Origin: Macrostomum lignano
Lineage: Eukaryota
Assembly (NCBI GenBank): GCA_002269645.1
Contig: NIVC01000822.1
Coordinates: 310,805-374,804 of the forward strand
Direction of reading: 5' to 3'
Length of the DNA stretch: 64,000 nt
A model generated the notes under the pieces. It was given only the letters and a program-made list of their open reading frames with translations, was not told where the DNA came from and searched no databases. How positions within the stretch are numbered: the stretch's first letter is position 1; each line of letters opens with the position of its first letter. Made by a program: the position numbers and the translations under genes. Shown one piece after another: positions 1,793 to 61,025 of this stretch.

Positions 1793-2338
1793 CTCGAGGT
1801 TGAGGCCTGTCTGTTAGTTGCGGTATCTCACACGATAGATCTCTCAAACTCTCTGGCCGTGACTGTTAAAAACTACATGTAGCTACAACAGAATCCCGAC
1901 TATACGGACGGTCTTGGCTTCTCGCGATTGTTTATTCTTTCCGGTCTTAGGTTGTTAAAGAAATAATCAAGTCTAATAAATCTGAGGGTTAGACTCTAAC
2001 AAAAAACAGGTAAATGAGCCCTGTGGCTAAATTATCGCTTTTATTTAATTAAATCGATCTTCTCTCTCTCCAACTCTCTGACTCATCAACGCCTCACGCA
2101 CATCAACCCCACCCCAACACACTCTGAGACGGGGACCGCCAAGCGTACACCTGCGACGCTACATATAGCAGAGGGTCGGTACGCAGGCACTCCAAATCCA
2201 ACACATAGGTGAACTTGAGCCACGATCATTAAGACAAGTGCATGTAAACATTGAAACAATTGGGGGGGGGCTGATTTTGAGACCAAACTGCATGAGCTGC
2301 GGCGAAACAAAGCAGACTCTGAAGCAGACTCAACTGAT

Positions 2339-4042
2339 TTGCTCAACTCTTCTCTAAAACTAGATTCTGAGGCTACGCCGCCTCTTGAGTACGAGTTGCA
2401 AATGGACCAGACGTTCTGTGATCCAGTGCACCAAGTTCGGAAAATGGAGTTCGGACGCGATAGTTTCTCCGGATTTGATGAGAAAGTGATTATGATCGTT
2501 GGTGAAACTGGCTCTGGAAAAACTACTCTGATCAACTCGATGGTCAACTACATCTTCGGTGTGAAGTACGAAGACCCGTTTCGCTTCAGAGTCGTTACAG
2601 ATCCAAAGGAAAAGAAACTTAAGACATTTCAGTCAATGAGTCAAACTCAATGGGTCACATCCTACACATTTCACCATCGCGATGGCTGTCAGCAACCTTG
2701 CTCGTTGACTCTGGTGGACACGCCAGGATTTGGTGACACTGGCGGCATCATGAACGACAAGAAGATTGTCGACCGAATCAGAGAGTTCTTCTCTTGTCCA
2801 AGTGGCATTGATCACTTGGATGCTGTGGGCTTTGTGGTGCCTTCGAGTGTCGCCAGACTGACGCCAACGCAGCGATACGTTTTCGACTCGATCCTCTCTC
2901 TGTTCGGTAAGGATATTGGCGAAAACATCTACATGCTAATCACATTTGCTGATGCAAATATACCTCCTGTACTCGAGTCCCTTAAGGAAGCGAGGATCTG
3001 CTACAATTTACACATCAAATTCAACAACTCTGCTGTATTTGCCAAGTGTCAGGAAATGGACCAGACGAGCCAAATGTTCAACAGAATGTTCTGGGATATG
3101 GGAATAAACAGCTTTCAAGGATTTTTCTCCCACTTGATGAAGATTACGGCAAAGAGCCTGACCCTGACCAAAGATGTTCTGAGTGAGCGACAGAGACTGC
3201 AGACTCACTTAATTGCCATCAAGGCGGAGATCGATCAAGGTCTGAACAAGTTGAATCAGCTGGAGCGCGAAATATCCGTTATCAAGGCTCACCAGTCAGA
3301 TTTGGACCGTAACCGCAACTTCACATACACAGTGGTGGAAGACACAGCAGTCTGCCAGCCGATTCCTTCCGGAACTTACATCACGAACTGTCTAACGTGC
3401 AACAGGACGTGCCACTATCCATGTGCGTTATCCGACGATGCAGACAAAATTCACTGCGTGGCGATGAAAGATGGCCATTGCCACGTGTGCGAAAGTGGTT
3501 GTGTATGGTCAGTCCACAAGAACATGATATACAAATTTGTTATTACTCAGCAAACTGTTACAAAGACGTCGGATGACCTGAAAGGTCGCTACACCGATGC
3601 GAAGGGGAAACTGCTGTCGGCCAAGCAGCTGGCGCAGCGGGTGTATGAGGAGTACCTCGGGATGAAGGCCAACGTGATGCAGCTGGTCAAGGAGAGCAAA
3701 AAGTGCATCGGGCGCCTGCAGCAGATCGCTCTGAAGCCTGACCCTCTGAACGAGGTTGACTACATTGACAAGCTGATTGACGCCGAGCAGATGAGCAAGG
3801 ATGATGGGTATCGCGACCGAATCCAACAACTGCTGGATATTCGAGAGCTCGCTGTCCGAGCTGAGAACCTGAAGAAGGACGAGCTGCTGAATGTACTGCT
3901 GCAGAGCGAAACGCGAGTTTACCGCAGGTACGAAGAGTTTTTTGTAAAGCCGAGCGCCTCTGGCATCACTGCGCACCTCCGAGGCGGCTTCAAGAGGCTG
4001 AAGCGACTGTTCTATGAAGGTGGCGGCCACTCACAGGCTTAG
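2339..4042 (+). CDS. Septin/AIG1-like P-loop GTPase with Cys/His-rich module and coiled coil; lacks the N-terminal domains of its paralog at 17608-21217
   Basis: 567-aa ORF with G1 GETGSGKT, G3 DTPG, G4-like TFAD and the Cys cluster CLTCNRTCHYPC...HCHVCESGC. First in-frame ATG is at 2402; the true 5' end is unresolved. Confidence 0.8.
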   Translation: MLNSSLKLDSEATPPLEYELQMDQTFCDPVHQVRKMEFGRDSFSGFDEKVIMIVGETGSGKTTLINSMVNYIFGVKYEDPFRFRVVTDPKEKKLKTFQSMSQTQWVTSYTFHHRDGCQQPCSLTLVDTPGFGDTGGIMNDKKIVDRIREFFSCPSGIDHLDAVGFVVPSSVARLTPTQRYVFDSILSLFGKDIGENIYMLITFADANIPPVLESLKEARICYNLHIKFNNSAVFAKCQEMDQTSQMFNRMFWDMGINSFQGFFSHLMKITAKSLTLTKDVLSERQRLQTHLIAIKAEIDQGLNKLNQLEREISVIKAHQSDLDRNRNFTYTVVEDTAVCQPIPSGTYITNCLTCNRTCHYPCALSDDADKIHCVAMKDGHCHVCESGCVWSVHKNMIYKFVITQQTVTKTSDDLKGRYTDAKGKLLSAKQLAQRVYEEYLGMKANVMQLVKESKKCIGRLQQIALKPDPLNEVDYIDKLIDAEQMSKDDGYRDRIQQLLDIRELAVRAENLKKDELLNVLLQSETRVYRRYEEFFVKPSASGITAHLRGGFKRLKRLFYEGGGHSQA

Positions 4043-4234
4043 ATGGGTTTGGCGCGCTAACATTTTTTGTTAAATGCGCTGTCATGTTTTTATGTTTCTG
4101 CAAATTGTAGCTGTGTTTTTTCAGTGTCATTTTTTCATACTCTCAATGCTAGATTAGGTTAACTGAAACAAGAAATTTTTTTTATTTTTTCAAATATTAA
4201 CGTACTTTTTGTGCGCGAAGTTCCTATAAAGTTC

Positions 4235-6090
4235 CTATTCTGCGTCCCGGGTTGCAGAAACAACTATAAAAGCAACAGCATTTGCTTCTTTATTAAAAAT
4301 GCTTCATTGCCAGACCAAGTTGCTTCAAGCTCCTTCAAGCCGAGCTGCAGAAGGAGATATTTACAGCAGCTCATGATCTTCGCTTATCTTCTGTACTCCA
4401 CCCGTGCTTCGGCTTATAAGACGATACTGGAGCAGGATGTCCTCTGTTTTCCATCTGATCGAATCCTTCGGTCTGTTTCAGCCAAAGTTGGTTCAAAGAA
4501 AGTTCTAGACATCGAAAGATACCTTCAGTTGAGAGCATCGAAGCTATCCCAGTTTGAGAAGACTGTCACACTTGTAATTGATGAGATTTACATCGCCAGC
4601 CGGGTTGAGTACAGCAACGGTCAAGTAACTGGACTGGGCGAATATGGTGCTGTTGCTTCAACGATCTGCTGCTTCATGATGAACTCTGTAGCTGGGCCAT
4701 ACAAAGATATGGTGGCGATGCATGCGGTGGCAGCCTTGACGGCAAAGAAGCTGACTGAATGGTTTCAGCAAGCCATGGATATGCTGAGAAGGCTGTCGTT
4801 TACCGTTATTGCCGCTGTGAACCGCAAATTTGTGAAGGGATTGTGCGGCAGTAGCTTCAACCCATCATTTCTAGATGAAGTAACCGGCCAGCCCATCTTT
4901 GTTTTTTTGACCCGGTGCACAATTTGAAAAATATCTACAACAATTTTCAAACTCGGGGAGTCTTCAGCTTTCTTTCGACTCCACTTCTGCCTAATGCTCG
5001 AGAAGCTCGTTTTGAGCACATCGTTCAACTCCACGAGCTGGAAGCATCGATGCCGCTGAAGTTAGCACACAAGTTGAACCTGACAGTTCTGAGTCCGAAG
5101 AGCATCGAGAGAACTTCTGTTCAAGTTGGCAGTTGATGTCTTTAATGACGCTACTCCAGATGCACTTCTCTATTACTCAGAATGGCGAGGCAAGGCCTGG
5201 AAAGCTACTGCAGACTTCATTAGCATAGTACTAAAGCTATGGACTGGAAGCTGCAGTTTCTCCACGAGTTTGCCGTTTTCCTGGACGAGTGAGAAGCATC
5301 AGCATTGGCTGGCCTGTCCAAGAAGACTTTCCTGGCATATAGAGTAACTTGTCGCGCTCTGGCTGCCTGTGCCATGCGCCTGCTCGATCGACAGGGCTTC
5401 GCCTACGTGCTCCTTGGAGCACTCCAATCGGACTGCATTGAGCGGAGATTTGGGTGGCTTCGCCAAATGTCTGGCGCCAACTACTATATTTTAGCTCGGC
5501 AAGTCAAGGAGAACAGCAGAAAGATCTCAACTGTTAGTTTGTTGAAGTACTCCAAGTTTTCCATAAAGGAGATCGACGACGCCTTTGACAAACCTAGTGA
5601 ATGTAGTCGACCCAAGGAGCTGGTCAGCTATCTGGCCAGTTTACTGGAACTGGATTGCGAGCCCCAGCAAGATGATTTTACTGTTATTTACTGCGTTATC
5701 GCTGCAGTTGGTCGAAATTTTTCGCGAAACCGAGCATGCGAGTTGTGCAAAGGCATGCTGCTGGATCCGAAGCTGCGTCGCCGCTAGAAGTTAACTGGGT
5801 TCCACCTCAGGCATCTGCATTCATTGACCAGATCAACCGAGGCGGTCTTTGCCAGCCGACGGAGCTTGTTTTTGCGTTGGCCACTCACTGCTGGAAAATC
5901 TTGGAAGAAGTTAAAAGCAAGGAGTCACTACGCAAGGAATTCCTGCACGCCCGACAGCAGCAACAAGTCTTCTGTGGACTCTTTGATGAGATGACAGACG
6001 ACCCCAAGTTTCTGGAGTGCTTTGCACATCTGACCACCTGCACAAAAAGGAGCAATCCACAACATCCAGTCAAGCACCAGGAGGAATAGG
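4235..6090 (+). pseudogene. Degraded P-element/THAP9-like transposase
   Basis: Truncated THAP start CVPGCRNNY, then LVIDEIYI (first catalytic D region), HNLKNIYNNF, LAHKL...PKSIERTSV and LQSDCIERRFGWLRQMSG (catalytic E region), spread over several frames with stops. TIRs not found. Confidence 0.8.
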
Positions 6091-11460: not shown

Positions 11461-14400
11461 ATGACTGTCTCCCAGGGCATCCACTGCTTGCAGGTCAACC
11501 TGAAGCACAGCATTGCTGCTTCAGTCAACCTCTTGAAGCACACTTACTAACTGACAAGTGACAACCGACGGCGAGATGATCCCAGTAGAGCGTGTCACAC
11601 TGGTCGAGCTCTGCTCCACCAGAAATTATGTGCTGCTTGTGGCAGGCGACATCAATGCCCACCACACCCACTGGGGCAGTTCTGATATAAACCAGAGAGG
11701 TGAAGACTTTCTGGCTTATATTGCTACTACAACCCTTGAGTTCTGTAACTCGGGTAGTACCCCTACCTTCAATAACGGACGCCGATCGGAGGTGCTGGAT
11801 GCCACCCTCGCCACGCCCAGGCTCTTCCAGAGCACTAGGGAGTGGCGGGTGCTTTCTGAGGCGTCCCTCTCCGATCACAAGTTCATCTCTTTCACGCTGG
11901 CCAGCGCCCGAAACGCAGGCCAGCTTTACTGGAAACGGAATGCTAGGAATACCGACTGGATCGCCTTCAGGCTTGCCCTGGAGGAGATCTATCGTTGCAC
12001 TAGCACTCCAGTCTCCATCAACACCTGCGAGGAAGCAGATGAATTTGCGGCCGCACTTACGGACTCGCTCACTGCTGCCTTCGAAGCCTCATGCCCACTA
12101 AAGGCAAATAAAGGCAAACAGTCGGCCCCATGTTGGAACCCGCAGCTTGGTGACCTCCGTCGCAGAGCTAAAAGGCTTCACCGTAGGGTCCAAAAAACTA
12201 AAAACCCGGCAGACCAAACCGCCTACCTGAACTCTATCCACGAGTTCAAGAGGCAGGTTAGGAACGCCAAAACCAACAAGTGGCGCGAATACTGTGAGGA
12301 ACTTGAGGGCTCCCGCCCCACCTCCAGAATCGTTAAAGCCCTCACCCTGGACAAAATGTCCAAACTCTCCTCAGTCAAGAGAGCCGACGGCTCGCTCACT
12401 GAGAACCCTGGAGAAACACTGGAAGCGATGCTAACAGCGTTTTTCCCGAACGAGCCAGCCAGGCCCGACCCCCTGATCACTCAGTGGGCGGACACGTACT
12501 GGCTGACTCAATCATCACGGAGGACCGCGTTTCTAAAGCTGTCTCCTCCTTCAAACCCTTCATATCCCCAGGACCGGACGGCGTTGTGCCAGCCTTCCTG
12601 CGGGAGGCGGTGAAATGAACCGGTTTCCTGCAGAACCTTTGCCGGCTTCTGAAAGCTTGCATTGTTTTCGGCTTTGTTCCGAAACCCTGGACCGAGGCCA
12701 AAGTGGTCTTTATCCCCAAGCCCGGCCGATCGGACTACCGGTCTATTAAATCCTTCAGACCAATTAGCCTCACCTTCTCATTGGTGAAGCTGTTAGAGAG
12801 ACTGGTGCTCTGGTGCCTCCTCTCTGTGGAACTGAAGAACAAGCCGCTCAGTGAGAACAAGCACGCCTTTCGGGCAGGCAGGTCCACGGAGAGCGCGCTT
12901 CACGTTTTGGTTGACATGCTGGAGAAAGCCGTTCTTGGTAATGGCTAAGCTCTCGCTTTCTTCCTCGACATTGTTGGAGCCTTCGATAATGTCCTCTTTG
13001 AGGCTTTTGACAGAGTTCTACGTGCTAGAGGAACCCACTCGCACCTCACCCGGTGGATCATGTATATGATCAGCCACCGTACTGCCACCGCACACCTGTT
13101 GGGCCACCAACGGACGGTAACCGTCTTCAAAGGCAGCCCCCAGGGCGGTGTCCTCTCTCCAGTTCTCTGGAACATGGTCATCGATGAGCTCCTCCAGGAC
13201 AGCCATCTTGACCCCATCCTCAAGGTCGGTTACACCGATGATGTCACAGCCGTGGCATCTGGACCGTCACCTGAAACCCTTAGGGATCTGCTGCAAAACT
13301 TTATTCGCTCTGCTGAACAATGGGCGGACAGGTGCGGCCTCAGACTCTCTGAGACCAAAACTGTCGCGATCATGTTCACCAGCAGGGTAAACTGGCTTAT
13401 TCGCCCACTAAAGCTTTACGGGGTGGAAATTCCATCCTGCAAGCAAACCAAGTGTCTCGGCGTTACGCTGGACCACCGGCTGAGCTGGTCCACATACGTC
13501 CAGGCCAAAACCAAAAAAGCCCTCGCGATTCTTGCGCAGCTGCGCAGAGCCGTCGGCACCACCTGGGGCCTCACCCCAAAACGGCTCTGGTGGATCTACA
13601 CCGCAATGGTCCGACCGGCCGTTACTTACGCCGGCCTGGTCTGGACCAGCGCCTTGCAGATTAAAACCTGCCACGAAGCCCTCAAAAAGGTGCAGGGACG
13701 TGCGTGCCGCATGATCCTGAATGCCCCGCTCTCTGCTCCCTTTGACGGCCTCAAAGCCTTTCTTTGCCTCCCGCCTCTGGACATCTTTGTCCGTCACGAG
13801 GCTGCTAAAACCACCCGCCGGCTCATCGAGGCTGGCGTTAGCTTCAAGCCACAATTGTGATGGCGAAGCGCAAGCTCCTGACGCATTCTGACCTGTGCCT
13901 TTAAGTTCTGGAGGAGAGTGGGAGTGCGGCTGTCCTTTCGGACGCTGAGCCGCGCTCCCTCAATCTCTACCAACGCTTCAAGGTCACTATCCCCTCCAGG
14001 GAGAACGCCAACGACAGCTGGGCCCTCAGGAGGTTCACTGCTTTACTGACGGATCCTCCAAAGACGGTTTATCCGGCTTTGGAGTCTGCATCCTTATTAA
14101 CGGCCGCGTGATTGCTACTCACGCCCAACACACTGGCAGACTCTCCAGCGTCTTCCAGAATGAAGTTCTTGCCATCAGCTCCTGTGCAGCTGAGCTCCAC
14201 TGCAGGGACTTCAAGGACAGAAGAATCTTCTTCCACTCTGACAGCCAGGCCGCTTTACAGGCCCTGTGTCACACCACTACGAACTCCCGAACAGTCCGCG
14301 ACTGTATCGGGCAGCTCAACAAGCTGGCTCGGAGGAACAGCGTCCGGCTTATGTGGATCCCAGGACACGCCGGCTTCAAAGGTAACGAGCTCGCCGACTC

Positions 14401-14923
14401 CCTCGCTAAGGCGGGCTGTTCCAGCTCGCCCCTTGGCCCCGTGCGCCTGGCCCCCATCCCCGCCACAGTCATTAATCGTCAGATTAACGACTGGGCGGAC
14501 ATCCTGCACTTGCGCAGATGGGATGGTATCTCCAACTGCCGCCAATCTCGTGCGGCAGTGCCCAATTCGTCCCTCAAGCTGCGGAGAATCCTTTTGAACC
14601 AAAATCGAAAAGATATCCGCGCTCTCACTATGACCTTCACAGGTCACGGTTGCTTTGCCAGGCACTGTTTCCTCCGAAGTTCCCGCCGGAGCGAACTCTG
14701 CCCTTTCTGCAACCTCGAGAACGAAGACGCCAAGCACTTCGTCTGCTACTGCCCGGCCTTCAACCGAGACCGGCTCAACCACCTCGGGCCCAACCCGTCC
14801 CTGGTCGACGTTTGCCGGCCCGAGAACATCCCACGGCTCATCCGGTTCCTCCGGGCCACCAAGCGAGCCTCCGTCTTCCCTACCGAAGACAACGCTGCAG
14901 ACAGGACCGGCAGACCTCCCTGA
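11461..14923 (+). pseudogene. LINE ORF2: APE endonuclease, RT, RNase H and CCHC finger, broken by stops, frameshifts and an EN deletion near 11545
   Basis: LQVNLKHSIAAS, GDINAHHTHWGS, LSDHKFI, FRPISLT, PQGGVLSPVLWN, YTDDV, TWGLTPKRLWWIYTAMVRPAVTY; RNase H TDGS..., SDSQAALQAL, WIPGHAGFKGNELADSLAK; CPFC...HFVCYC. Confidence 0.92.
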
Positions 14924-15034
14924 CCGGCCCCGCGCCCTAGCCTATGCGGGTTTTTCAGGGATTAGCGAAATGGGCGACGCTCGCCTCCCCGCTGCGTCTT
15001 CGGACCGCCCTGCAGCTAAGTCAAGTAAGTCAAG

Positions 15035-16261
15035 CGGCTAAGACTGCCCGCCGTCTAGCTGACGCTGGCATTCGAATCCAGCCCCATAGGGCCATGGCTA
15101 AGCGCAAGCTTCTGCCCCACGCCGACCTCTGCCTCAAGGACTTGAGAGACAGCGGCGGGCTCCACGTCCTATCTGACGGCGAACCCCGCACTCTCAACCT
15201 CTTTCAGCGCTACAAGATCACCATGCCCTCTAGGGATGCTGCCAATGACCACTGGAATTTCCAGGAGGTCCATTGCTACACGGACGGATCCATCAAAGAC
15301 GGTCGCGCCGGCTTTGGGGTCTGCTTCATCATCAACGGCCGCGTAATTGCCACGCATGCCCAGCACACTGGTAGACTCTCCACAGTCTTCGAGAACGAAG
15401 TCCTTGCCATCAGCTCTTGCGCTGCAGAGCTGAACGCCAAGGGTACGAGAGGAAAGACTATTGTCATCTACTCCGATGGCCAAGCGGCCTTACAGGCCCT
15501 TTGCCACACCAAAACGAACTCCCGGACAGTCGCCGACTGCGCTCGGCAGCTCAACCTCCTGGCCAGTAGCAATACTGTCAGGCTGAAGTGGATCCCAGGG
15601 CACGCAGGGTTTCCGGGGAACGAGCTGGCAGACACCCTCGCCAAGAGGGGCGGCTTTGGCTCTTTCTTCGGCCCTGCCCCCCCCCCGGTCCCTATGCCCT
15701 TGACAGTCATCAATCGTCAGATCGACGACTGGGCTGACTCCCTCCACAGGGACAGATGGGCGGGCACCCAAAACTGCCCCGGTAATCTCGTGCCGCGGTT
15801 CCTTGCCCGTCTCGCAGGCTCAGAAACATCCTTCTGAACCAGAATCGGAAGGATATTCGAGCCCTTGTCATGACCCTCACGGGCCATGGCTACCTCGCCA
15901 GGCAATGCTTCCTCCGAGGTGACCTCGAGAGCGAATTTTTCCCCTTTTGCGAGTGCGACAATGAAGATGCTCAGCACTTTGTTCGTCACTGCCCTTTCTT
16001 TACCAGAGACCGGCTACGCTACCCGTCTTGACGAGGTTTGCCAACCCGACAGCATCTCACGGCTCATCCAGTTCCTTCGGGTGACTAGACGAGCCAATTT
16101 CTTCCCAACGGAAGATCACGCTGCAGGACGGACCGGCGGACCACCCTGACCGGCCCCACGCCTCTGCCTGTCTGCGGGCCTTCAGGGGCTAGCGGAATGG
16201 GCGACCCTCGCCTCCCCGCTGTGTCTACGGACCACCCTGCAGCTAAGTCAAGTAAGTCAAG
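15035..16261 (+). mobile_element. 5'-truncated sister-subfamily LINE segment (RNase H, CCHC, 3'UTR and tail) fused directly behind the first element
   Basis: Starts at AAKTARRL, homologous to AAKTTRRL near 13801; CYTDGSIKDG...WIPGHAGFPGNELADTLAK; ends TAAGTCAAGTAAGTCAAG followed by the TSD GGCCGAAAGCCG at 16262-16273. Confidence 0.9.
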
Positions 16262-17607
16262 GGCCGAAAGCCGATTGAAAAAGCGAATAGTGGGGAATTA
16301 GAATTACTGGTACATCTACTGCTCTGGCTTTGGATTGGAGTGTGAACGCGCGTTTATTATTACTGCTTGTGGTTGAACGAGTTAAATAATATAGCTAGCC
16401 CAATCAATCTGGATAGGTACGCGTATAATTAGATAAATAGCCTTTTAGACATTTTTGCCCCAGCAGCATCAACGTGTACTTGGATATCTAAACAAAATTG
16501 AGCCAAAACTACGCGGGCATAAATGGCAGACAAACTTTGAAAAAGTGTCGACAAAAAATAACTGGTCACAAAAATTATCCGCATAAGCACATGAAATAAA
16601 TTGGTTACTGGAATGATATAGCTCGTAGAAAGATGCGTAAAAAATTGTTTAGTCACGGGCTCACACCTAAGAAAACGCTTAAATGTGCAAAATATTGAAA
16701 TAATATATCAATTTGTTTTAGTGTACTCACAATGAAAAATGAGAGCAAAGAGTGGTTAAAAACTAAATTAAGTTACTATGTATTGAATTTAAAAAGGTAA
16801 ATTTACTTAAATTTTAACTTTAAACAGGCAAGAATCAAACGAATTGTGGCTGTAAAAAGCCAATTAATTCGCGAGTTCTTGATAGCTGTTGATTCGGTGT
16901 GGACACAAAATTGCAGCTGAACATTTTTCTGAATGTCGAAACGATGGCTTGACACATGTGCAATAGCGATTAGTTAGTTCTGGCCATTATTCCCCAGTGC
17001 TAATAATAACACCAAGAATTTTAATCAATATGGTGATGGAAACTTGGTTGTAGATTTTTTACATAATATTTGGCTTAGGACCAAAATTTGTGCTATTTTG
17101 TGCCTTTACCGCTTTACATGTATTTGGGTGCAACTAAGTGCAACAAAATACATGTACGGTCGTAGATTGCCTGGGAAAATATAGTTGAGTATTCAGGTTT
17201 AGTTATACGAGTATCTAGATTCCAGCTGTTACAGCAAAAAGCTAGATGTCAAAGATGCAAAGAAATATCGTAATTCAAATATTATTTTTGGATTCGGATT
17301 GTTATTTGTTATTTTAAAATGAGAATTATAAAAAAGGCTGCTTGCTTTAGCTAAAGCCTTTTTAACACGTCAAGCAGCGGCAAAGATCAATATTTAAGCA
17401 GCGAAACTAAGAATTTTAATATCAAGTTCTTTTTTGCTTGAGCCATCCACTGCATATCCGATATATATGAATATATAGCTAGCTATTTTTAATTTTAATT
17501 AATTGGATGCTTAAAAATTAAGGAAATATAGAAAAACGCGACAACGCATTTAGCACAAAAAGTATCTGCACACTGAACCTGTCTAAGCCTGCGAGTCGCT
17601 GCTACCT

Positions 17608-20600
17608 TTAAGAGAACAGCCATTTGGCTAGCCTCTCGATACCTCCTCGGATGTACGCAGTGATGCCATAGACGCTCGTCGGCTTCGGAAAAAACTCTTC
17701 GTACCTGCGGTAAACTCGGGTCTCGGTCTGCAGGAGTACGTTCAGCAGCTCGTCCTTGCCTAGGTTCTCAGCTCGGACAGCGAGCTCTCGAATATCCAGC
17801 AGTTGTTGGATTCGGTCGCGATACCCATCATCCTTGCTCATCTGCTCGGCGTCAATCAGCTTGTCAATGTAGTCAACCTCGTTCAGAGGGTCAGGCTTCA
17901 GAGCGATCTGCTGCAGGCGCCCGATGCACTTTTTGCTCTCCTTGACCAGCTGCATCACGTTGGCCTTCATCCCGAGGTACTCCTCATACACCCGCTGCGC
18001 CAGCTGCTTGGCCGACAGCAGTTTCCCCTCCGCATCGGTGTAGCGACCTTTCAGGTCATCCGACGTCTTTGTAACAGTTTGCTGAGTAATAACAAATTTG
18101 TATGTCATGTTCTTGTGGACTGACCATACACAACCACTTTCGCACACGTGGCAATGGCCATCTTTCATCGCCACGCAGTGAATTTTGTCTGCATCGTCGG
18201 ATAACGCACATGGATAGTGGCACGTCCTGTTGCACGTTAGACAGTTCGTGATGTAAGTTCCGGAAGGAATCGGCTGGCAGACTGCTGTGTCTTCCACCAC
18301 TGTGTATGTGAAGTTGCGGTTACGGTCCAAATCTGACTGGTGAGCCTTGATAACGGATATTTCGCGCTCCAGCTGATTCAACTTGTTCAGACCTTGATCG
18401 ATCTCCGCCTTGATGGCAATTAAGTGAGTCTGCAGTCTCTGTCGCTCACTCAGAACATCTTTGGTCAGGGTCAGGCTCTTTGCCGTAATCTTCATCAAGT
18501 GGGAGAAAAATCCTTGAAAGCTGTTTATTCCCATATCCCAGAACATTCTGTTGAACATTTGGCTCGTCTGGTCCATTTCCTGACACTTGGCAAATACAGC
18601 AGAGTTGTTGAATTTGATGTGTAAATTGTAGCAGATCCTCGCTTCCTTAAGGGACTCGAGTACAGGAGGTATATTTGCATCAGCAAATGTGATTAGCATG
18701 TAGATGTTTTCGCCAATATCCTTACCGAACAGAGAGAGGATCGAGTCGAAAACGTATCGCTGCGTTGGCGTCAGTCTGGCGACACTCGAAGGCACCACAA
18801 AGCCCACAGCATCCAAGTGATCAATGCCACTTGGACAAGAGAAGAACTCTCTGATTCGGTCGACAATCTTCTTGTCGTTCATGATGCCGCCAGTGTCACC
18901 AAATCCTGGCGTGTCCACCAGAGTCAACGAGCAAGGTTGCTGACAGCCATCGCGATGGTGAAATGTGTAGGATGTGACCCATTGAGTTTGACTCATTGAC
19001 TGAAATGTCTTAAGTTTCTTTTCCTTTGGATCTGTAACGACTCTGAAGCGAAACGGGTCTTCGTACTTCACACCGAAGATGTAGTTGACCATCGAGTTGA
19101 TCAGAGTAGTTTTTCCAGAGCCAGTTTCACCAACGATCATAATCACTTTCTCATCAAATCCGGAGAAACTATCGCGTCCGAACTCCATTTTCCGAACTTG
19201 GTGCACTGGATCACAGAACGTCTGGTCCATTTGCAACTCGTACTCAAGAGGCGGCGTAGCCTCAGAATCTAGTTTTAGAGAAGAGTTGAGCAAATTATAC
19301 TTCATTCTGTCCGCTAATGTCGATTTTACTTCATGGGTGACATTCCTTCTCTGCTCTCCAACAGAGTTATCTGAGAGCACTGCTGAAGCAGAAAATGCAC
19401 AGCAGCCATCTCCATTGACTTCGATGGGAACAGTCTTTTGCGAAGGATCAGCCTTAACATAAGTCTCATGGCCTGAGCTGTGTCCCTGCTCGAGCACAGT
19501 GATTCGATAACCAACCAGACGGGCTTTTTGCTGCTGCAACACAGGCGGAGTCAGCTCTAGTTCCACACGAAATGGGGACACCTGCGTAACTGAAGCAATG
19601 TCCGGAGCGGCGCATGCCAATGTTGTCACCATCGGCAGATATTTCACTTCGCAGCGACCGAACATCCGAATGGTCTGATAGGACACCTGATAGGCGGTAC
19701 CCATTTTCAACTGCTCAAGTCGAGCAATTCCACCGTTTGAGCCAAAGTTTTTGATGAGCTCCATCCACTCATTGCTGTGTTCTTCCTTGTAGCGAATCGA
19801 CACACCTTGAACTTCGTTTTCTTTAAAATCAGCAGCTCTCAGAGGTGAAAATAGCAGCTCAATTGCATTTGACACAGAACGCACGGAGCCAACAGAAAGG
19901 GATGCGGAAAAACTCTCAATAGAGAATAATATTGAGTCCAGGCGTTCAAGTACAATATGAGCACGAATTATTTTTTCGGCTTGCTGTTGCAACTTTATGC
20001 AAAGATGCCAATCGTCTTGTTGATCATTAGCCTCAATTACTTTTAGCATAGCTTGCAAACTTTGGGTACAATCTTTGAGAGCAGTCGCAAGATCGAAATC
20101 CTCCCATTGCAGCAACTTTGGTGCGTTGGTTGGAAATACCAACGACACGGTGCAGCAGGTCTTGCCACCAGCTGGTTCAAAAGCTTTCGATTTTGACAGC
20201 TGCGTTATAGCCGTTAAGACATCGAGAAACTCACCCAGCATTGGCAACCAGCTAAAGCTGGGAACGAAAGGAATGCAGTCCTTCAGAGATGCGGGTGTCT
20301 GGGTGCTGTTTCTAACTCGAACTTTGTTCACTGTAACATTATTCTGCACAAACTGCAAAGCTGTAGTCAGTGTTTTGCGTAGATACGGAACATCATGTAG
20401 CACTTTGTAGCCCAGAAGCTCCTCAATACTTCGAGCCACCTTCTGACCTTCGTATAGCCGCTGCAGCACATCTGCACTGGTATTACACCCTTGAACGGAA
20501 CTCTGCTGCTTGCTGGCATCAAAAACTTTAAACAGATTGGCAGCATGAAGTGGTCCTTCGGGAGCAGCATCCATTTTTTCAAGAGAGTCTTTAAACTCAG

Positions 20601-21217
20601 ACAGACCCATTAGTATTACGGTGCCATTTAAAAATGTTTTAATCTTGGCCGTTTCAATGTCGCCATCGCCTGAAAATGAAAACATGGAACAACTAGTGAA
20701 AATTTAAAACAAAACATATTCTATGCTTTAATATCTTAGCGCGACATCAAAGGGTCGTACCTTTCACGATTCCACACAGCAGCCACCCTTGCGACACGCA
20801 GGATACTTCACCGGGCTTTACACCTCCCTGATCAACTGCACTGGCAGAGACGCATTTTTCTTGGAGAACGCCTATCACTAGCTGCTTGGAGAAGTCGCAG
20901 TTGTCCCACAGGTAATGCAGCAGGTCTTGAAGCGAGCAGTTGACATTACTCGTACTTGGCGATGCGTGGCAAATAAGCTTCAGAGCCTGCAGAGAAGTCA
21001 GGCCGAGAGCAGCGACATCGCTTAGAAATGTGTCCGAGCTGTCAAAGAATATTTCTATTTTTTTGTTGCTGACCGCATCCTTGAGTCTGAACTCTGCTCC
21101 AGGGGAGGAATCGCCATGCGAACTCTCAATAAAGCTGTCCGACTCTACTGAGTATTGCTGACCCAGGTTAACTTGTCTGTCAAATGAATGCAGCCAAGCA
21201 GATTGACGGAATGACAT
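17608..21217 (-). CDS. Two-exon gene (21217-20761, 20669-17608), 1172 aa: stonustoxin/MACPF-CDC-like N-terminus (tentative), two FN3 domains, septin/AIG1-like GTPase, Cys-rich module and coiled coil
   Basis: A 91-nt GT-AG phase-1 intron (GAAAG|GTACGA ... TTTTCAG|GC) joins the 156-aa and 1025-aa ORFs in frame (GIVK-G-DGDIE). FN3-like segments: LEQLKMGTAYQVSY and LVGYRITV. GTPase motifs: GETGSGKT, DTPG, TFAD. Confidence 0.88.
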
Positions 21218-22574
21218 TTTTACTTCTGAAATATGATCATTGTGTTTAGAATTTAATATTCAATCAAGATTTTTTTGTATGAAACAGACACACAGGACAG
21301 TTGGGTGTCTTAAATTCATTTACCACACTTTCCCAGATCTCCGTTTACCATCGGTTTTGAAATGCATGAAATTTTTTCCAAACCAATAGAACTAATTTTC
21401 TGAAATCGATCCCATGCCTAGAAACAAACAACTCATTTTTAGTATATCACACTTACTATTAGGTTCTACCTATCTAAACCCTTGTTTAAATCATGATATG
21501 TTCAAAAGAATTCAAATAATTTTTAGGGCTTCCCAAATTGAATATTTAAATTTTTTAGCAAAATTTAGCAACATTTTTTTGAAAAAGGTACTTTTGATAC
21601 GAAACAAAGTATGCATCAAACCTTAATTTAATCTAATAAATTTATAAACACGGCTGATTTTCTAATGATACATATTCGTTTCACTCATACTAACATTTCT
21701 AGTGATAAGTGACAACCATATAATATATAAGACAAGGAAAATGTCTAAGTTTAATTCTATTATCTAAACATAACCTAAGATTAGGAATAATGTTATCTAC
21801 TATCCACCAACTTTAAGTGGTGTTTTATTCAAACTGTTAGTCTTTGCTCAAAAGAAATGTTCACACAGCATTGCAACGCAATCTGCAGTTGGGCCATCAC
21901 TGATTCACGATAACAAAATAATACATGTAGGTCATTTAAAATGATTCGGGGAAATTGGTTTCAGCGGTATTGTAAACCTGCTTTTACGCTTATGAAATTG
22001 TTTAAAGTAAAAAAGTCGAATATTATATCCTACTATTTACTTATATTTTCTTTATTCTAAAACGATAAACATCCTCGCTATAAAAATAAAAGGCATTAGC
22101 TCGTATAAAGATAATCAGATCTTGGTTTTGAATGACCACACTACTTAAGTATTCAAATGCATAAATACATACAGTGAATAGGTAGTTGAGTAGATAAATA
22201 AGTGTATAAATTAATCAGCAGAGGACTCAGTAGTGACTTATTTTTTATCCACGTACAACGTGCAAGTAAATCATTTGAAAACGATGCACAAAATCCAAAA
22301 GTGGTTTTAAATATGCAAGTTTGTACGCGGATTAACAAATATCAACGCACCGTTTTTATTACGTAGCTTTGCTTGAAATAAAATCGGTGGAATTTTTATA
22401 TAATTTTTTTGTTTATTTTTGCACAAAATATAGACCTCGAGAATCGTATTTTCGCATTGAATAATAATGAGCATTTCAACTGCTCATTGAAAAGATTCGC
22501 TTTCGCCAAAATGGATTTTTCCGTTTTAAAGCCCTGATTTTAGGTTAGGCGCACTCAAGATTCTATATTAGTGG

Positions 22575-24179: not shown

Positions 24180-24320
24180 TGTTGTGGGTGAAACAAAAGT
24201 TCCTCATAGACATTTATTTACGTGCCTGCGCAAATGTTAAATGAAGAGGTCGAACGGACCAAACTAGAAAAGAAAAAAGAATAAAATGAATTAAGAGCTG
24301 AGCTCAGCGTCAATGAGCCA
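24180..24320 (+). mobile_element. Putative short LTR (TGTTG...CA) between two Gypsy fragments
   Basis: Begins immediately after the PPT, ends in CA and is followed by PBS-like TGGATACGAG. Confidence 0.45.
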
Positions 24321-24359
24321 TGGATACGAGCTACATTGAAGGCTTAAAGACAAAATACA

Positions 24360-24772
24360 ACAGCGGCAAGATGAATCATCTGGCCAAGGCTTGCTTCAGC
24401 GGCCGCTCAAAGATCAACGCACTGCAGCCAGAGCAAGATCAGCCAGCCGACCAGTCGGTGAGCGAAGTGTTCTGCACCCTCAGCGCCAAGGACGACGGAG
24501 CCAAATTCAGCATCGGCATCAACGGACAGGAAATCCGCACCCTAATTGACAGTGGGGCAAGCTGCAACGTTCTGGACAACGCGACGTTCCGCAGAGTATG
24601 CCGCCGTAGTGGCACGCCGCTGACACCGTCCAACACCAAAGTCTTCGTACTCGGCGCCAGCGAACCGCTGGAGGTGGCGGGCCAGATCCAGCTACCAGTC
24701 AGCGCAAACCGCCACGAGTTGGAGGCCACCTTTATCATCATCAAGAGCAGCTGCACTCTGATACTCGGCTAA
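24360..24772 (+). mobile_element. Gypsy gag zinc-knuckle remnant and aspartic protease
   Basis: NHLAKAC (half CCHC) followed by INGQEIRTLIDSGASCNVL. Confidence 0.85.
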
Positions 24773-27890: not shown

Positions 27891-28397
27891 ACTAGCTGTT
27901 GAAACCTGCAGATTTTGAACCCGGGGAATTCCAATCCCCGGAACTATTTTTGCATGTATTTTGAAATCCAAGGCCATACACAACAAAAACTTGTTAATAG
28001 TTAGTAGAGTAGAGGTAAATATAAAGTGGAGTACATTCGTGTAAAATTTGGATTTGAGGCAAACAGTGATATTGTTGGCTGGGGTGCTGCGCAGAATGTG
28101 AGGCAATGTCGGTCTGACTCTGAACATGTAATTGACAAACTCTGGCCTCTGCCTCTGACTCTCCCTACGTACCTTGGATCCTTTGAAACTTATATCTTCT
28201 CTTCTGTTTCCTCTCTTCTCTCTCGTCTGCTATCTCATCTCTCCTTTCTCCTCTTTTATCTCTTCTCTTTTCTCTCTGCTCTCTACTCTCTCTTCTCTCC
28301 CCTCTTCTCATTCCTCACTCTCCCCTCTCTCAACACTTCCATCTTCTCTCCTCTCTCCTCTACTCTATCTCATCTCTCCTCTCTACTCTTACCTCTC

Positions 28398-28428
<31 letters not shown>

Positions 28429-28985
28429 CTCTCTCTCACACACACACTCTCTCTCTCCCATTTCTATTCTCCTCTCTCTTCTCATCTCTGTAAGATCTTT
28501 TCTCTTATCTCTCCTCGTTCTATCTAAACTCCCATCTCCCGTCTGTTCACTCTCGTCTTTGCTGCCTCATCCCCCTCTTTCATCTGTCATCTTCTCTGAT
28601 CTCTCATTTCTCATCTCTCCTTGCACCTCTCTCATCTCTACAACCTTTGAGATGTAGAGATGTATTTTGATCTCTTCTCTCTTCCCTTTAATCTCTCATC
28701 TCTCCTTTCACCTCTTTCCTCTCTCCTCTCTGCTCCTCTCTCCTTTCTCCTCTCATCTGCAGCTCTCTGCTCTCTAATCTCTACTCTCTTCTCTCTCTTC
28801 TCTACTCGCTCCTCTCTACTCTCTCCTCTCTAATCTTATCTCTCTCATCTCGCTTCTCCTCTCTCCCCTCTTCTCCCCCTTTCTCTCTCATCGACCTCAC
28901 CCCTCGTCTTATCCCTTATTATCCTTTATCGCCTCTCCTCTCTTTTCGAAAAAGGACAGATTTTTCATTTTTTATGTATACATAT
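27891..28985 (+). mobile_element. Non-autonomous Helentron/HINE-like element with a CT-rich core
   Basis: Starts ACTAGCTGTT; a ~280-bp head is shared with 34483-34760, followed by a decayed CT-rich array; ends GGACAGATTTTTCATTTTTATGTATACATAT. Class assignment is by resemblance only. Confidence 0.45.
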
Positions 28986-34482: not shown

Positions 34483-36240
34483 CAAGCTGTTGAAACCCGT
34501 AGATTTTGAACCCGGGGAACTCCATTCCCTGGAATTATTTTTGCATGTATTCTAAAATCTGAGGTAAAACTCAAACAAAAACTTGTTCCCTTGTTAATAG
34601 CTAGGATAGAGTTAAACATAAAATAGTGTACATTCATGTAAAATTAGGATTTGAGGCAAACATTGATATTGTTGCCTGGGGTGCTGCGCAGAATGTCTGG
34701 CAAACTCTGGCCTCTATGTACCTCTGCCTCTCCCTATGTCCTTTGCATCCTTTGAAACTTCCATCTTCTTTTCTGTTTCCTATCTTCTCTCTCGTCTCTT
34801 CTCTCTCTCCCCTCTTATCTCTTCTTTCTTCTCTCCTCTCTCGTCTCCTCTCTCGTCTCTTCCCTCTCCCCTCTATTCTTTTCTCTCTCTTCTCCTCTCT
34901 TCGCTCTGGTCTCTGGTCTCTCATATCTCATTTCTTCTGTTTTATCTTTTCTCATTTCTCTCTGCTCTCTACTCTCTCTTCCCTCTGCTCTCTGCTTTCT
35001 CTTCCCTCACCTCTCTTCTCACTCCTTACTATACCCTCTCTCAACACTTTCCTTATCTCTACTCTCTCCTTTTTCCTCTCTTCTCTCAACTCTTTCCTCT
35101 CCTCTGTCCACTCTTTCCTCTCATCTCTCTGCTCTCTCCTATCCTATCTCTCTTCTCTCTCTTCTCTCCCCTCTTTCCTCTCCTCTCTCGTCCTTTTCAC
35201 CAATTTCCCCTGTCCTCTCTATTCTCTCCCCCTCCTCTCTCCTCACTCACTTCTCATCTCTCCCTTGTCTCCACCTCTCATTCCTTATTTCTTATCTCTC
35301 CTCTTTTCTCTCTACTCTCCCATCTCTCGTCTGTTCACTCTCGTTTCTGCTCTCTCATCTCCCCTCTCTTATCTGTCATCCTTACTCTCATATGTTATCT
35401 CACCTCTCTTCCCTTGTACTCCTCTCTTTCCCCTTTTTGACTCAGGAGGACTCGATCCTTTCTTCTTTCTTCTCGTCTCGTCTCTTCTCTCTTCTATACT
35501 TTCTCCCTCTCTTGTCTTCTCTCTTCTTTCTCACTCTCCTCTCTCCTCTCTTATATCGTCTTTTCACTCTCATCGTTGCTCTCTCATTCCCCTCTCTCTT
35601 CTGTCATCTCTACTCTCCTCTCTACTGTGCACTCTTCTCTTTCCCCTCTTCTGACTCCTCTCTTTCCTTACTCCTCTCTTCTCTTCCCTCTTCTATACTC
35701 TCTCCCCTCTATTCTCTTTTATCGTCTCTCCGCACTCTGCTCTCTCTTCCTTCATCTCTTATCTCTACTTTACTCTCTCATATTTCCTTTCATCTCACTC
35801 ATCTCTACAATCTTATCTCTTTCCTCTCTCCTCCTCTTCCCTTTACTCTATCATCTCTCCTTTGTCCTCTCTTCTTTCTCAACTCTCTCTCTCATCTCTA
35901 TCTTCTCTCTTCTCTCTCGTCTCTCCCCCTCTTATCTCCTCTCCTCTATCCTTTCTAATCCCCCCTCTCGATACTCTCATCTCCTCGTTGTTCTCTCATC
36001 TCACTCTTCTCTACTCTCCTCTCTCATCGATCCTCTGTCTCATCTCTCCCCTCTTCTCTCCATCTTCTCACCTCTACTATTTCCTCTCCCTTCTCTCTCC
36101 CCTCCTCTCGCTTCTTCGTCCCATATTCTCTGCTCTCTCCTCAACCTCCTCGTATGTCTCTCCTGTTATCTTCTATCTTTTCTTTTATCCCCTCTTGCCC
36201 CTCCTCCCTTTCTAATAGTCTATTCCTTTTCTTTTTCACT
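34483..36240 (+). mobile_element. Second copy of the head + CT-rich element
   Basis: AGCTGTTGAAACCCGTAGATTTTGAACCCGGGGAA...GGGGTGCTGCGCAGAATGT matches the 27893-28100 head, followed by ~1.5 kb of pyrimidine-rich sequence. Confidence 0.6.
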
Positions 36241-40547: not shown

Positions 40548-41048
40548 GTAGTTGCTGTGCCAGCCTCCCAGATCCTCAGTTGCTGGGCCACCAGCCTCCC
40601 AAATCCTCAGTTGCTGGGCTATCGCCCTCCCAGACCGTCAGTTGCTGGGCCAGCCTTCCAGATCCCCAGTTGCTGGGCCAGCCTTCCAGATCCCCAGTTG
40701 CTGGGCCAGCCTTCCAGATCCCCAGTTGCTGGGCCAGCCTTCCAGATCCCCAGTTGCTGGGCCAGCCTTCCAGATCCCCAGTTGCTGGGCCAGCCTTCCA
40801 GATCCCCAGTTGCTGGGCCAGCCTTCCAGATCCCCAGTTGCTGGCTGGGCCAGCCTTCCAGATCCCCAGTTGCTGGGCCAGCCTTCCAGATCCCCAGTTG
40901 CTGGGCCAGCCTTCCAGATCCCCAGTTGCTGGGCCAGCCTTCCAGATCCCCAGTTGCTGGGCCAGCCTTCCAGATCCCCAGTTGCTGGGCCAGTCTCCCA
41001 GATCCCCAGTTGCTAGGCCAGCCTTCCAGATCCCCAGTTGCTGGGCCA
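40548..41048. repeat. 28-nt minisatellite CAGTTGCTGGGCCAGCCTTCCAGATCCC, about 17 units
   Basis: Head-to-tail units without spacers. Confidence 0.95.
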
Positions 41049-53319: not shown

Positions 53320-54450
<1,131 letters not shown>

Positions 54451-55200: not shown

Positions 55201-56044
55201 TCACCCTCTGCCATCCTTCCGCTCATTCTCACCTTCTATAACCTCCACTTGAACATCTCTCCTGTCCTGCCCCAAGCGTGACTTACCAGTACCAAACAGT
55301 TATCAAGGCAAGAGGCATCTGTGGCTTTTTGTAAATTTTCATCAAAATCGCAAAGCACTGTTAGTTTTAAAAATTTCACAGCCCCAGAATCCAGACAGTC
55401 CCCCCACCCAGTCACCCTGCAGCCAAGGAAAACCCCTGGCTTACTTTAAAAAAACTAATTGAACAAAATCTCTCCACAGGATTCGGGCCGGAGGCGCTGG
55501 CTTGAATTTCTCAGTTCGTGCCTTCGCATGGCAGCTGGGCAGCCTCTCTGGACCATTCATCATCACCCGCCCACCCCCAGCGCCTCGATAATGAAACCCG
55601 AAGCTAAGAAAGATGAAGAATCAGAACAAAACAGAAAATACCTCTCTACAAGCGAACGGAGGCTTCCGTCTTGTCTGGCAGCAAAAGAAGCCGACAGCCC
55701 AAGCAACCCTCAGGTCCCGTCTGGTTATCCGTCTGTCTGCGATTCGCGGAGACCCCGGCTGCCCGGTGCTCTGATAAATTGCTTCTAGGAAACCATCCCA
55801 GCAGTTCCGCCGGCTTTTAAGTGCAAAAATTGCCCGCTTCTAAAAGCAGTTGTAAATTCTGCCATATTCGGCGACCACTTGAAGCAGCCTCGGAGCCACT
55901 TTAAAGTTTTTTACGTTGAAATTGCTACTTAGGTTGCAATGCGCTTCTGCTGTCTGCTTTGACTCCGGACTGTTGGGGGCTTAGCGTTTGGAAATACGGA
56001 ATCTCTTTAGTGTTTCCCTGTCTGGTGGATAAAAGACTTCCGTA

Positions 56045-58675: not shown

Positions 58676-59309
58676 GTCCTTTTTAGCTGAACTACTCAAA
58701 CTTTAAACAGTCAAGCTAAAATCGAACTCAGGACGACGCTGTACAGCCGATGCAAGCGATGCACACAAAAAGTTAGCCAACAAGTTTTTGTTGTTCATTT
58801 TTTATTTTTCAGCGCATTCCAATTCTGATTGCCCTTCAGAGTGGCTTGTAAAAGCAGTCTTGCAGCTAAGTGGAGCAAAACAGCATCACGGCCAGCGCTG
58901 AAACGCCCACCAGCGGCTTCAGGACACGAAGGTCAGGCCCGAGTCTGCCAGTGATTAGTCACAGCCGACCGGGTGCAGCCACTGCCCGCTTGTATTTTGC
59001 GGAAGTGCGACTTTCACAATGAACATGCAAGTCGGCTCCGCTTTGCTGCGCTGCCCGAATCAGAGCCAGACTTTTTTCTTGAGGCCCGATCCCCCGGTCG
59101 GAGCGCATTCCTCAGCTGTGATCTATCGGCACCCTCTTCAGCCGCGCACCCACAGCTTTTATAACCCTCCATGCAGCTGTCTGAGAGGCCCGGGCACGAG
59201 GGACTTCCTGATGCATTCCTGACTGTGTGCTGGCGCCCTGCCGCTGCCGTGGCTGTCTGCTGCGGATCCACCGGAGCTCAGAGATCTCCGAACGTCTGCC
59301 TCCGGCTTC

Positions 59310-60976: not shown

Positions 60977-61025
<49 letters not shown>

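Follow-up and report, generated by a model that had tools for sequence, protein, structure and literature searches.

A two-exon Macrostomum gene for a 1172-residue protein with a predicted AIG1/Toc34-like GTPase core, a helical stalk and an invariant Cys/His knob

The window, which is the whole stretch of 64,000 nucleotides of Macrostomum lignano DNA that was analysed, contains on its minus strand an intact, expressed-looking gene that is predicted to encode a soluble, cytosolic multidomain GTPase. The working engine of this protein seems to be its conserved C-terminal half (aa ~610-1172), which would consist of a G domain of AIG1/Toc34 type, a long stalk of two antiparallel helices, a Cys8His2 β knob and a closing helical bundle. 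The N-terminal ~600 residues, an orphan and probably largely helical domain followed by two FN3-like domains, appear to be a flatworm-specific add-on. By analogy with related GTPases, we lean slightly toward the view that the protein is a cytosolic, nucleotide-regulated and oligomerising scaffold with lineage-specific adaptor domains.

Gene structure

Two minus-strand open reading frames are present, at 20747..21217(-) and 17608..20685(-). The earlier note had joined them through a hidden 91-nt intron into a protein of 1172 residues, and this was borne out. Exon 1 (20761..21217(-)) starts with the ATG at 21217, the first in-frame ATG downstream of an in-frame TGA (21262..21260), and encodes aa 1-152 together with the first base of codon 153. 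A tttcag, at which a spliced leader might be joined, lies 10 nt upstream of this ATG. The intron (20670..20760(-), 91 nt) has GT..AG ends and is in phase 1. Exon 2 (17608..20669(-)) encodes aa 153-1172 and ends with the stop codon at 17608..17610. At the junction, the minus strand reads ...GTGAAAG at the end of exon 1, GTACGACC... at the start of the intron, ...TTTCATTTTCAG at its end, and GCGATGGC at the start of exon 2. Excision of 20760..20670 keeps the frame and gives a coding sequence of 3519 nt for 1172 aa with a single terminal stop; reading into the intron leads to a TGA after four codons.

The M. lignano protein P0001, which is 89% identical over the full length, reads ...LLCGIVKGDGDIET... 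without interruption over the junction. Its locus (L001) has a homologous intron of 77 nt at the same site and with the same ends. At the equivalent position, to within one codon of the alignment, a phase-1 intron of 1234 nt also interrupts the gene of the paralogue P0004, which is only 28% identical in the N-terminal domain. The two-exon Macrostomum gene for a 1172-residue protein is thus confirmed. The window protein has no entry of its own on record, nor did an exact look-up find the exon-2 reading frame.

Structure of the G domain

The conserved core begins with a lead-in (aa 606-655; 19162..19311(-)), in which a helix and short strands pack on the G domain. This lead-in is conserved family-wide, and the confidence of the AlphaFold2 (AF2) model is high from about aa 597. 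The G domain itself (aa 656-877; 18496..19161(-)) belongs to the AIG1/Toc34/septin class, as the earlier note had proposed. It contains conserved G1 (GETGSGKT, aa 666-673; 19108..19131(-)), G3 (DTPG, aa 738-741; 18904..18915(-)), G4-like (TFAD, aa 813-816; 18679..18690(-)) and G5-like (NNSA, aa 840-843; 18598..18609(-)) motifs. All four are invariant or nearly so in 122 homologues, and their positions were verified against the coordinates; G1, G3 and G4-like had previously been described as intact.

Two Pfam families match this domain above their cut-offs. The Septin match (E 2.2e-8) covers only positions 7-75 of 280, whereas the AIG1 match (E 3.5e-8; 33.5 bits against a cut-off of 27) covers positions 3-128 of 212. 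In the AF2 model of the core, pLDDT is mostly >90. A Foldseek search with this model gave Toc34 (1h65; E 7.8e-7, TMt 0.55) and GIMAP2 (2xtp; E 2e-6, TMt 0.54), with septins below them at ~1e-4, and a search of BFVD placed AIG1 proteins of giant viruses at the top. The G domain is real, and its modelled fold is closer to Toc34 and GIMAP2 than to septins.

In structure, the G domain is most like Toc34/Toc33 and GIMAP2/GIMAP7, although the likeness to Toc34 and GIMAP2 is moderate (identity 16-19%, TMt ~0.55). These AIG1/Toc34 proteins, called "paraseptin" GTPases, are characterised by nucleotide-dependent dimerisation, established for Toc34, GIMAP2 and GIMAP7. The C-terminal membrane anchor or amphipathic helices of GIMAP and Toc34 are absent from the window protein, which has no hydrophobic segment there. 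Instead, its C-terminus is formed by the stalk, the knob and the helical bundle; the long stalk and the Cys/His knob are lacking in both Toc34 and GIMAP. The septins are alike from the P-loop to switch II, and septins in the PDB match at E ~1e-3. However, these alignments end after G3, and the G domain of septins, with its septin unique element, is not matched over its full length. In addition, the G4 motif is AKAD in septins and TFAD in the window protein, where G1 and G3 are present.

Stalk and Cys/His knob

An outgoing stalk helix of 50 residues (aa 886-935; 18322..18471(-)) follows the G domain, modelled with pLDDT >90. At its tip, a β-rich Cys/His module (aa 940-1021; 18064..18309(-)) is delimited by conservation and by the AF2 model. 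A returning helix of 52 residues and the C-terminal helical bundle (aa 1022-1172; 17611..18063(-)) complete the protein, as seen in the model and in the family alignment.

The Cys-rich module named in the earlier note turned out to be strongly conserved: eight cysteines and two histidines (C962, C965, C969, H970, C973, C984, C992, C995, C999 and H1004) do not vary across 122 sequences. They are arranged as C-x2-C-x3-C-H-x2-C ... C ... C-x2-C-x3-C ... H. From this residue pattern alone, we infer a zinc site in the knob. A profile of the stalk and knob found no relative among PDB sequences, and none of the Foldseek matches in the PDB was specific to this part.

The core family and its spread

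Word-indexed searches, whether the query was the full protein or an alignment of three sequences, returned just three M. lignano proteins; the wider family was uncovered only by a core query beginning after the P-loop. The core (aa ~610-1172) then gave 547 matches, the best 120 of which have 41-49% identity, 92-100% coverage and E values of 1e-114 to 1e-138. These 120 come from fish, prawns (Macrobrachium), a sea anemone (Exaiptasia), a mussel (Potamilus), an ostracod (Darwinula) and a cyanobacterium (Microcoleus).

The family has no name of its own. Its members appear as si:ch73-170d6.2 in zebrafish, as "AIG1-type" or "Septin-type G domain-containing proteins" in UniProt, and as "GTPase" in Microcoleus anatoxicus. 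The ~545-aa core aligns end to end with these proteins, and the G motifs, the stalk and the eight Cys and two His are common to all. They are 410-670 aa long, whereas the window protein has an extra ~600 aa seen only in Macrostomum. Literature searches with the zebrafish gene name and the M. lignano locus tags gave nothing relevant. This is a large conserved and uncharacterised GTPase family, no member of which is studied in the literature searched.

In M. lignano, the hypothetical proteins BOX15_Mlig028320g2, Mlig002341g1 and Mlig027469g1 have the full architecture and the same intron site as the window protein. None of the M. lignano proteins is identical to it (P0004 has 44% identity overall), and its C-terminal tail differs from theirs. 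Identity between the two M. lignano subfamilies is only 28% for the N-terminus and likewise for the FN3 region, but 65% for the core. This comparison of sequences indicates that the ~600-residue N-terminal extension evolves much faster than the core.

A second copy, inverted and 5'-truncated, is located in the window at 2337..4091(+) and is equivalent to aa 607-end; the M. lignano copies are in tandem. Its reading frame is open over 2339..4042. It has 96.9% nucleotide identity to 17532..19295 and 95% amino acid identity (tblastn), with dN/dS of 0.49, and over its last ~70 aa it shows no difference from M. lignano P0007. This copy begins almost exactly at the core boundary, which fits a self-sufficient core.

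Such a distribution brings to mind the ancient conflict or immunity modules common to bacteria and aquatic animals. The core might be the NTPase switch of one of these, but we regard this as unlikely. The same low credence applies to its corollary, that the N-terminal position is occupied by exchangeable domains with effector or anchoring roles, among which the Macrostomum N-terminus would be a new effector. The patchy occurrence in organisms as different as a cyanobacterium and fish, with identities of 41-49%, is in accord with this idea. So are the several copies located on one chromosome in prawns and cyprinids, as in M. lignano and in the window, and the tight three-gene cluster in which the cyanobacterial gene lies. 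The N-termini of the homologues also differ: that of P0011 is hydrophobic, P0090, P0105, P0106 and P0128 have MG..S myristoylation-like starts, P0110 has a weak SAM-like match, and P0126 has FN3. Furthermore, AIG1/GIMAP relatives are linked to immunity. However, the PADLOC models of defence systems, like NCBIfam, gave nothing beyond P-loop-level matches, and a scan across the genomes of bacteria and archaea was uninformative, being saturated by the P-loop pattern with three irrelevant weak matches. A bacterial origin is backed by nothing longer than contigs of 3-7 kb. Moreover, selection on the Macrostomum N-terminal domain is purifying, not diversifying (dN/dS 0.31).

A bolder version is less probable still. 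In this version, the GTPase-stalk-Cys8His2 core would be an undescribed, anciently mobile switch of cyanobacteria and aquatic animals used in cell-autonomous defence or in conflict, and the fast-evolving Macrostomum N-terminal domain of 425 aa would be a new effector fold, conceivably membrane-active, under control of the GTPase. It should be mentioned that a Rosetta-stone link between the flatworm N-terminus and the 532-aa protein encoded upstream of the cyanobacterial homologue was rejected because the hhalign probability was 0.1%. Likewise, no homologue of the Macrostomum N-terminus was found upstream of the mussel gene for FN3 and core.

The N-terminal extension

The region of aa 426-605 (19312..19851(-)) probably comprises two tandem FN3-like domains. 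Its profile matched almost exclusively FN3-containing proteins in the PDB (fibronectin, MER, NCAM2, Tie2, contactin, Dscam and titin), and UniProt names P0002 and P0009 "Fibronectin type-III domain-containing". The PDB matches have E values of 0.003-1, the Pfam fn3 match (E 1e-3, 19.5 bits) is below the cut-off of 25, and the AF2 model of this region is unreliable (pLDDT <50). The two FN3 domains of the earlier note are thus plausible but weakly supported: the profile matches agree with them, and the scores fall short.

The domain in front of them (aa 1-425; 19852..21217(-)) spans the intron. An exhaustive phmmer search of 1.84 billion representatives found it only in Macrostomum (P0003 and P0004). 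Two marginal phmmer matches, the TIR-repeat protein P0005 and P0006 with its tandem 20-aa motif, were spurious, since tblastn on L007 matched just the repeated 20-aa stretch. Neither a signal peptide nor a transmembrane helix was found in the protein, whose hydropathy over 19 residues peaks at 1.37. The AF2 model of the full length, built on a six-sequence alignment, has a mean pLDDT of 40.9; aa 1-425 are mostly <50 and at best in the 50s. This low-confidence model shows ~52% helix and 7% strand in aa 1-425 and places short hairpins (aa 138-174) between stretches of helix. Foldseek with the unreliable full-length model found GTPases only and was uninformative on the N-terminus.

It was proposed earlier that this domain forms pores as MACPF/CDC domains of the stonustoxin type do, and that under gating by the GTPase it acts as a toxin or immune effector. 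This is very improbable. The first of two motifs recognised by eye has 6/16 identities at the very N-terminus, but the same level was reached somewhere in 258 of 2000 shuffles (13%). The second has 2/11 identities at the site given, a score that all 2000 shuffles exceeded. Pfam gave 0 families at E<=10 for aa 1-437, the stonustoxin-specific models in the Pfam copy used not being confirmed by a positive control. At E<=10, the PDB sequences matched by a four-sequence N-terminal profile included no MACPF/CDC chain. The MACPF signature (Y/W-G-T/S-H-F/Y-x6-G-G) is absent from both the query and P0004, although divergent members can lack it. The hairpins might be taken as a trace of the MACPF/CDC fold, in which a bent sheet of four strands lies between two helical clusters that can refold into hairpins, but the predominance of helix in the same low-confidence model does not favour it.

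The lack of a signal peptide is compatible with the proposal, since stonustoxin-type cytolysins are likewise large, soluble multidomain proteins without one; beyond this, one motif resemblance at chance level is shared. The domain order is unlike: in stonustoxin, MACPF is followed by helical, thioredoxin-like and PRYSPRY domains, whereas the window protein has an orphan domain, FN3-like domains and a GTPase. Families combining a stonustoxin-like head, FN3 and a septin-type G domain, said in the earlier note to be established in aquatic animals, were not recovered. None of the best 120 core homologues has room for such a head, their N-terminal extensions measuring 45 aa in the median and 144 aa at most, and no paper on a stonustoxin and septin/AIG1 combination was found in the literature library searched. 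A stonustoxin/MACPF-like N-terminus is therefore not supported, and the GTP-gated immune or toxin effector built on it was pure inference.

Selection and integrity of the locus

Comparison with the M. lignano copy gave dN/dS of 0.29 overall, 0.23 in exon 1 and 0.15-0.41 in every domain, at dS of 0.19. These values indicate that both exons are under purifying selection. The window is rich in transposons and repeats, in agreement with the transposon-dense neighbourhood noted before, and the homology to L001 reaches no farther than ~340 bp on the upstream side and ~200 bp on the downstream side of the gene. That the gene is a duplicate in repeat-rich DNA, decaying or misassembled, and its long frame without functional consequence, is scarcely credible, for despite the nearby LINE and TNP-like transposase fragments, satellites and truncated second copy, the frame of 3519 nt is uninterrupted, dN/dS is low in every domain, all family-invariant residues are kept and the flanks are conserved over the ~340 and ~200 bp. 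A transposon-borne gene was also considered but rejected: the paralogues lie at unrelated loci, one of them beside MAPEG genes, and the ends of the L001 homology also argue against it.

Proposed function

The reading we prefer remains that of a scaffold. Binding of GTP would most likely lead to dimerisation or oligomerisation of the G domain, by analogy with Toc34 and GIMAP2/7, and this would make the protein a nucleotide-switched scaffold. Dimerisation is carried over here at 16-19% identity, with moderate TM-scores and partial coverage of the Pfam Septin and AIG1 profiles. The knob at the tip of the stalk is presumably zinc-bound. The N-terminal extension is most likely a protein-interaction or targeting module and not a pore-forming domain; the roles of the N-terminal domain and the FN3 region are guesses, as pLDDT there is mostly <50.

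A GTP-gated perforin-like toxin would have been a striking find, but the sequence and profile tests gave it no support. Left in its place is an unstudied, conserved family of AIG1/Toc34-like GTPases whose coiled-coil stalk carries an invariant Cys8His2 knob at its tip. The family occurs patchily between a cyanobacterium and fish and has multiplied in several aquatic animals, and Macrostomum has fused its core to ~600 residues without relatives elsewhere. Macrostomum lignano is a tractable laboratory flatworm, in which RNAi and transgenesis are available. It would therefore be a reasonable place to learn what the family does and whether it belongs among the immunity-associated GIMAP/AIG1 proteins.

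Gene structure and relatives in Macrostomum

The DNA of the window is eukaryotic and rich in repeats. On its minus strand, two open reading frames (ORFs) of 156 aa (20747..21217) and 1025 aa (17608..20685) are joined by a 91-nt GT..AG intron (20760..20670). The first exon ends in ...GTGAAAG, the intron runs from GTACGACC... to ...TTTCATTTTCAG, and the second exon begins with GCGATGGC. Excision preserves the frame and leads to a 3519-nt CDS encoding 1172 aa with a single terminal stop; unspliced reading meets a TGA four codons on. This predicted CDS is exactly the fusion claimed in the earlier note. Past an in-frame TGA (21262..21260), the first ATG in frame is that at 21217. The sequence "tttcag" occurs 10 nt before the start codon (21221..21230, minus strand), and could be the splice acceptor of a 5'-UTR intron or one used in trans-splicing of a spliced leader, a process that M. 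lignano is known to have.

Database searches gave M. lignano hypothetical proteins as the nearest relatives, and no identical entry was found in the protein collection searched. P0001 (BOX15_Mlig028320g2, 1175 aa) shows 89% identity over the full length and is continuous across the junction. Its annotation omits five residues (SEKIK) of the Cys-rich module that are present in the genomic coding sequence. Its locus (L001, M. lignano assembly GCA_002269645.1) has 89% nucleotide identity to 21554..17404 and contains a homologous 77-nt intron with the same site and ends. P0004 (1179 aa), from a second M. lignano subfamily, has the same architecture, an N-terminal domain of only 28% identity, and a phase 1 intron of 1234 nt whose aligned position agrees to within one codon. 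Between the window gene and the L001 copy, dS was 0.19 and dN/dS was 0.29 overall: 0.23 in exon 1, 0.31 in the N-terminal domain, 0.36 in the FN3 region, 0.15 in the G domain, and 0.41 in the Cys module. This means that the window gene is a constrained coding gene; it is a new copy of annotated but unstudied Macrostomum proteins. On NIVC01002038.1 of M. lignano, L001 and another family member (L011) are in tandem on one strand, 12 kb apart (about 51.6-55.3 kb and 67.3-70.3 kb).

Second copy and genomic surroundings

An inverted, 5'-truncated duplicate of the 3' half of the gene is located at 2337..4091 (plus strand), with 96.9% nucleotide identity to 17532..19295. It starts almost exactly at the boundary of the conserved core (aa ~610-1172) and has an open frame of 567 codons (2339..4042). 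From its first Met, it would yield a "core-only" protein like the short members of other animals. Since its last ~70 aa exactly match those of a different M. lignano paralogue, P0007, and not the full copy in the window, it seems to be a mosaic, which suggests that gene conversion shaped it. A plus-strand ORF for a TNP-like (P-element/THAP9-type) transposase RNase H N-terminal domain (4211..4927; E 3.7e-10) begins 120 bp past the end of the duplicated segment. This ORF may be linked to the origin of the truncated copy.

Remains of a non-LTR retrotransposon (endonuclease, reverse transcriptase, and two RNase H ORFs) occupy 11558..15837 on the plus strand; this block is GC-rich (56-62%), and a related fragment lies at 16021..16261. 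A retroviral-type aspartyl protease fragment (24320..24772, plus strand) gave two Pfam matches, both just under the curated cut-offs. Large satellite arrays and long CT-rich microsatellite tracts are found at 41552..44031, 56044..58678, 40550..41048, 28211..28875, 34767..36142, and 53327..54407. The array units are 25 bp (x101), 17 bp (x155), and 28 bp (x17), and arrays and tracts yield many spurious long ORFs. The neighbourhood is thus transposon-rich, as had been proposed. A minus-strand ORF in very GC-rich sequence (60688..62526; 61-70%) encodes an immunoglobulin I-set domain (E 7e-12) with a weak fn3 match behind it; this ORF is probably one exon of a gene of the cell-adhesion type.

Structure and distribution of the conserved core

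The AlphaFold2 model of the core, based on a 122-sequence alignment, has pLDDT mostly above 90. The G domain (aa 656-877) is followed by a 50-residue helix (aa 886-935), a beta-rich Cys/His module (aa 940-1021), a returning 52-residue helix (aa 1023-1074), and four closing helices. The two long helices are predicted to form an antiparallel stalk, and the module at its tip is a probable zinc knob. In the same alignment, G671 and K672 of G1 (GETGSGKT), the switch-I residue Thr714, the G3 DTPG, the G4-like TFAD, and the G5-like NNSA are invariant or nearly so, as are eight Cys and two His residues (C962, C965, C969, H970, C973, C984, C992, C995, C999, and H1004).

In the Foldseek search of the PDB, the core matched Toc34 best (E 7.8e-7, TMt 0.55), then GIMAP2 (2e-6, TMt 0.54) and Toc33, with septins after these at about 1e-4. 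None of the matches listed was specific to the stalk or knob, and a sequence profile of these parts found no PDB relative. In a viral structure library, giant-virus AIG1 proteins lead. The GTPase and the Cys-rich module of the earlier note are both real features. The Pfam Septin match is limited to model positions 7-75 of 280; therefore, the protein is not a septin proper, and "AIG1/Toc34-like" is the better label.

A core query beginning after the P-loop retrieved 547 homologues, of which the best 120 show 41-49% identity over 92-100% of the query and are mostly 410-670 aa long. They include vertebrates (many fishes, zebrafish si:ch73-170d6.2 among them, a bichir, and a catshark), invertebrates (Macrobrachium prawns, the anemone Exaiptasia, the mussel Potamilus, and the ostracod Darwinula), many metagenomic contigs, and the cyanobacterium Microcoleus anatoxicus. 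The Microcoleus homologue (665 aa, 45% identity to the query) is intron-less and comes last in a compact cluster of three genes on one strand (contig JBBLXT010000331.1, 520..4927). The other two encode a protein of 238 aa that matches beta-flower weakly and a coiled-coil-like protein of 532 aa with no family match. NCBIfam and PADLOC gave only P-loop matches to the window protein, and no paper mentioning the core family was found in a literature search. Within the AIG1/Toc34-like GTPases, the core falls in a large branch that is still uncharacterised.

A role in defence or conflict would fit the patchy distribution of this family, its bacterial relatives, its multiple copies per chromosome, the differing N-termini of its members, and the link of AIG1/GIMAP proteins to immunity. 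However, selection on the N-terminus is purifying, not diversifying (dN/dS 0.31), and such a role seems rather unlikely.

N-terminal region and possible function

Residues 426-605 likely form two FN3-like domains. The Pfam fn3 score (19.5 bits) was below the cut-off of 25. A profile of the region matched almost only FN3-containing proteins in the PDB (E 0.003-1): fibronectin, MER, NCAM2, Tie2, Cdon, contactin, Dscam, and titin. The best alignment covers two consecutive fibronectin repeats. In addition, two M. lignano models are named "Fibronectin type-III domain-containing" by UniProt, and the mussel homologue also has FN3 immediately before the core. AlphaFold confidence was low over this region.

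The stonustoxin/MACPF reading of residues 1-425 is unsupported. Pfam found no family in residues 1-437 even at E<=10, and exhaustive phmmer against 1.84 billion representative proteins found only the M. lignano cluster itself and P0004; two marginal matches were spurious on follow-up. Run against the full set of PDB sequences at E<=10, a profile of four Macrostomum N-termini retrieved no chain of MACPF/CDC or stonustoxin type, its sole match being an unrelated orphan protein (E 0.18). Neither the window protein nor P0004 contains the canonical MACPF signature. The first of the two motifs likened to stonustoxin has 6/16 identities, reached by 13% of shuffles of the protein, and the second has 2/11 at the cited site, a score that every shuffle exceeds. 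With a shallow alignment, AlphaFold2 gave pLDDT below 50 over most of the domain, in a low-confidence model of about 52% helix and 7% strand. Neither a signal peptide nor a transmembrane helix was found in the protein. Overall, a GTP-gated pore-former is very improbable.

In the best 120 of the 547 homologues, the stretch that precedes the core is 45 aa long at the median and 144 aa at most, so that the ~600-aa Macrostomum extension is a lineage-specific addition; the combination of SNTX-like, FN3, and septin-type G regions, taken earlier as an established family, does not hold among them. Some homologues start with a hydrophobic segment, others with an MG..S sequence resembling a myristoylation signal, and one has a weak SAM-like match. 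The two M. lignano subfamilies share 28% identity in the N-terminus and FN3 region versus 65% in the core; the extension evolves faster than the core.

Overall, a soluble cytosolic GTPase that works as follows is somewhat favoured. GTP-driven dimerisation or oligomerisation is established for Toc34 and GIMAP2/7. By analogy, GTP binding would probably cause the window protein to dimerise or oligomerise via the G domain, and the stalk and Cys/His knob would offer another surface for interactions. Flatworm-specific adaptor or targeting modules are the probable role of the FN3-like domains and of the orphan domain at the N-terminus.
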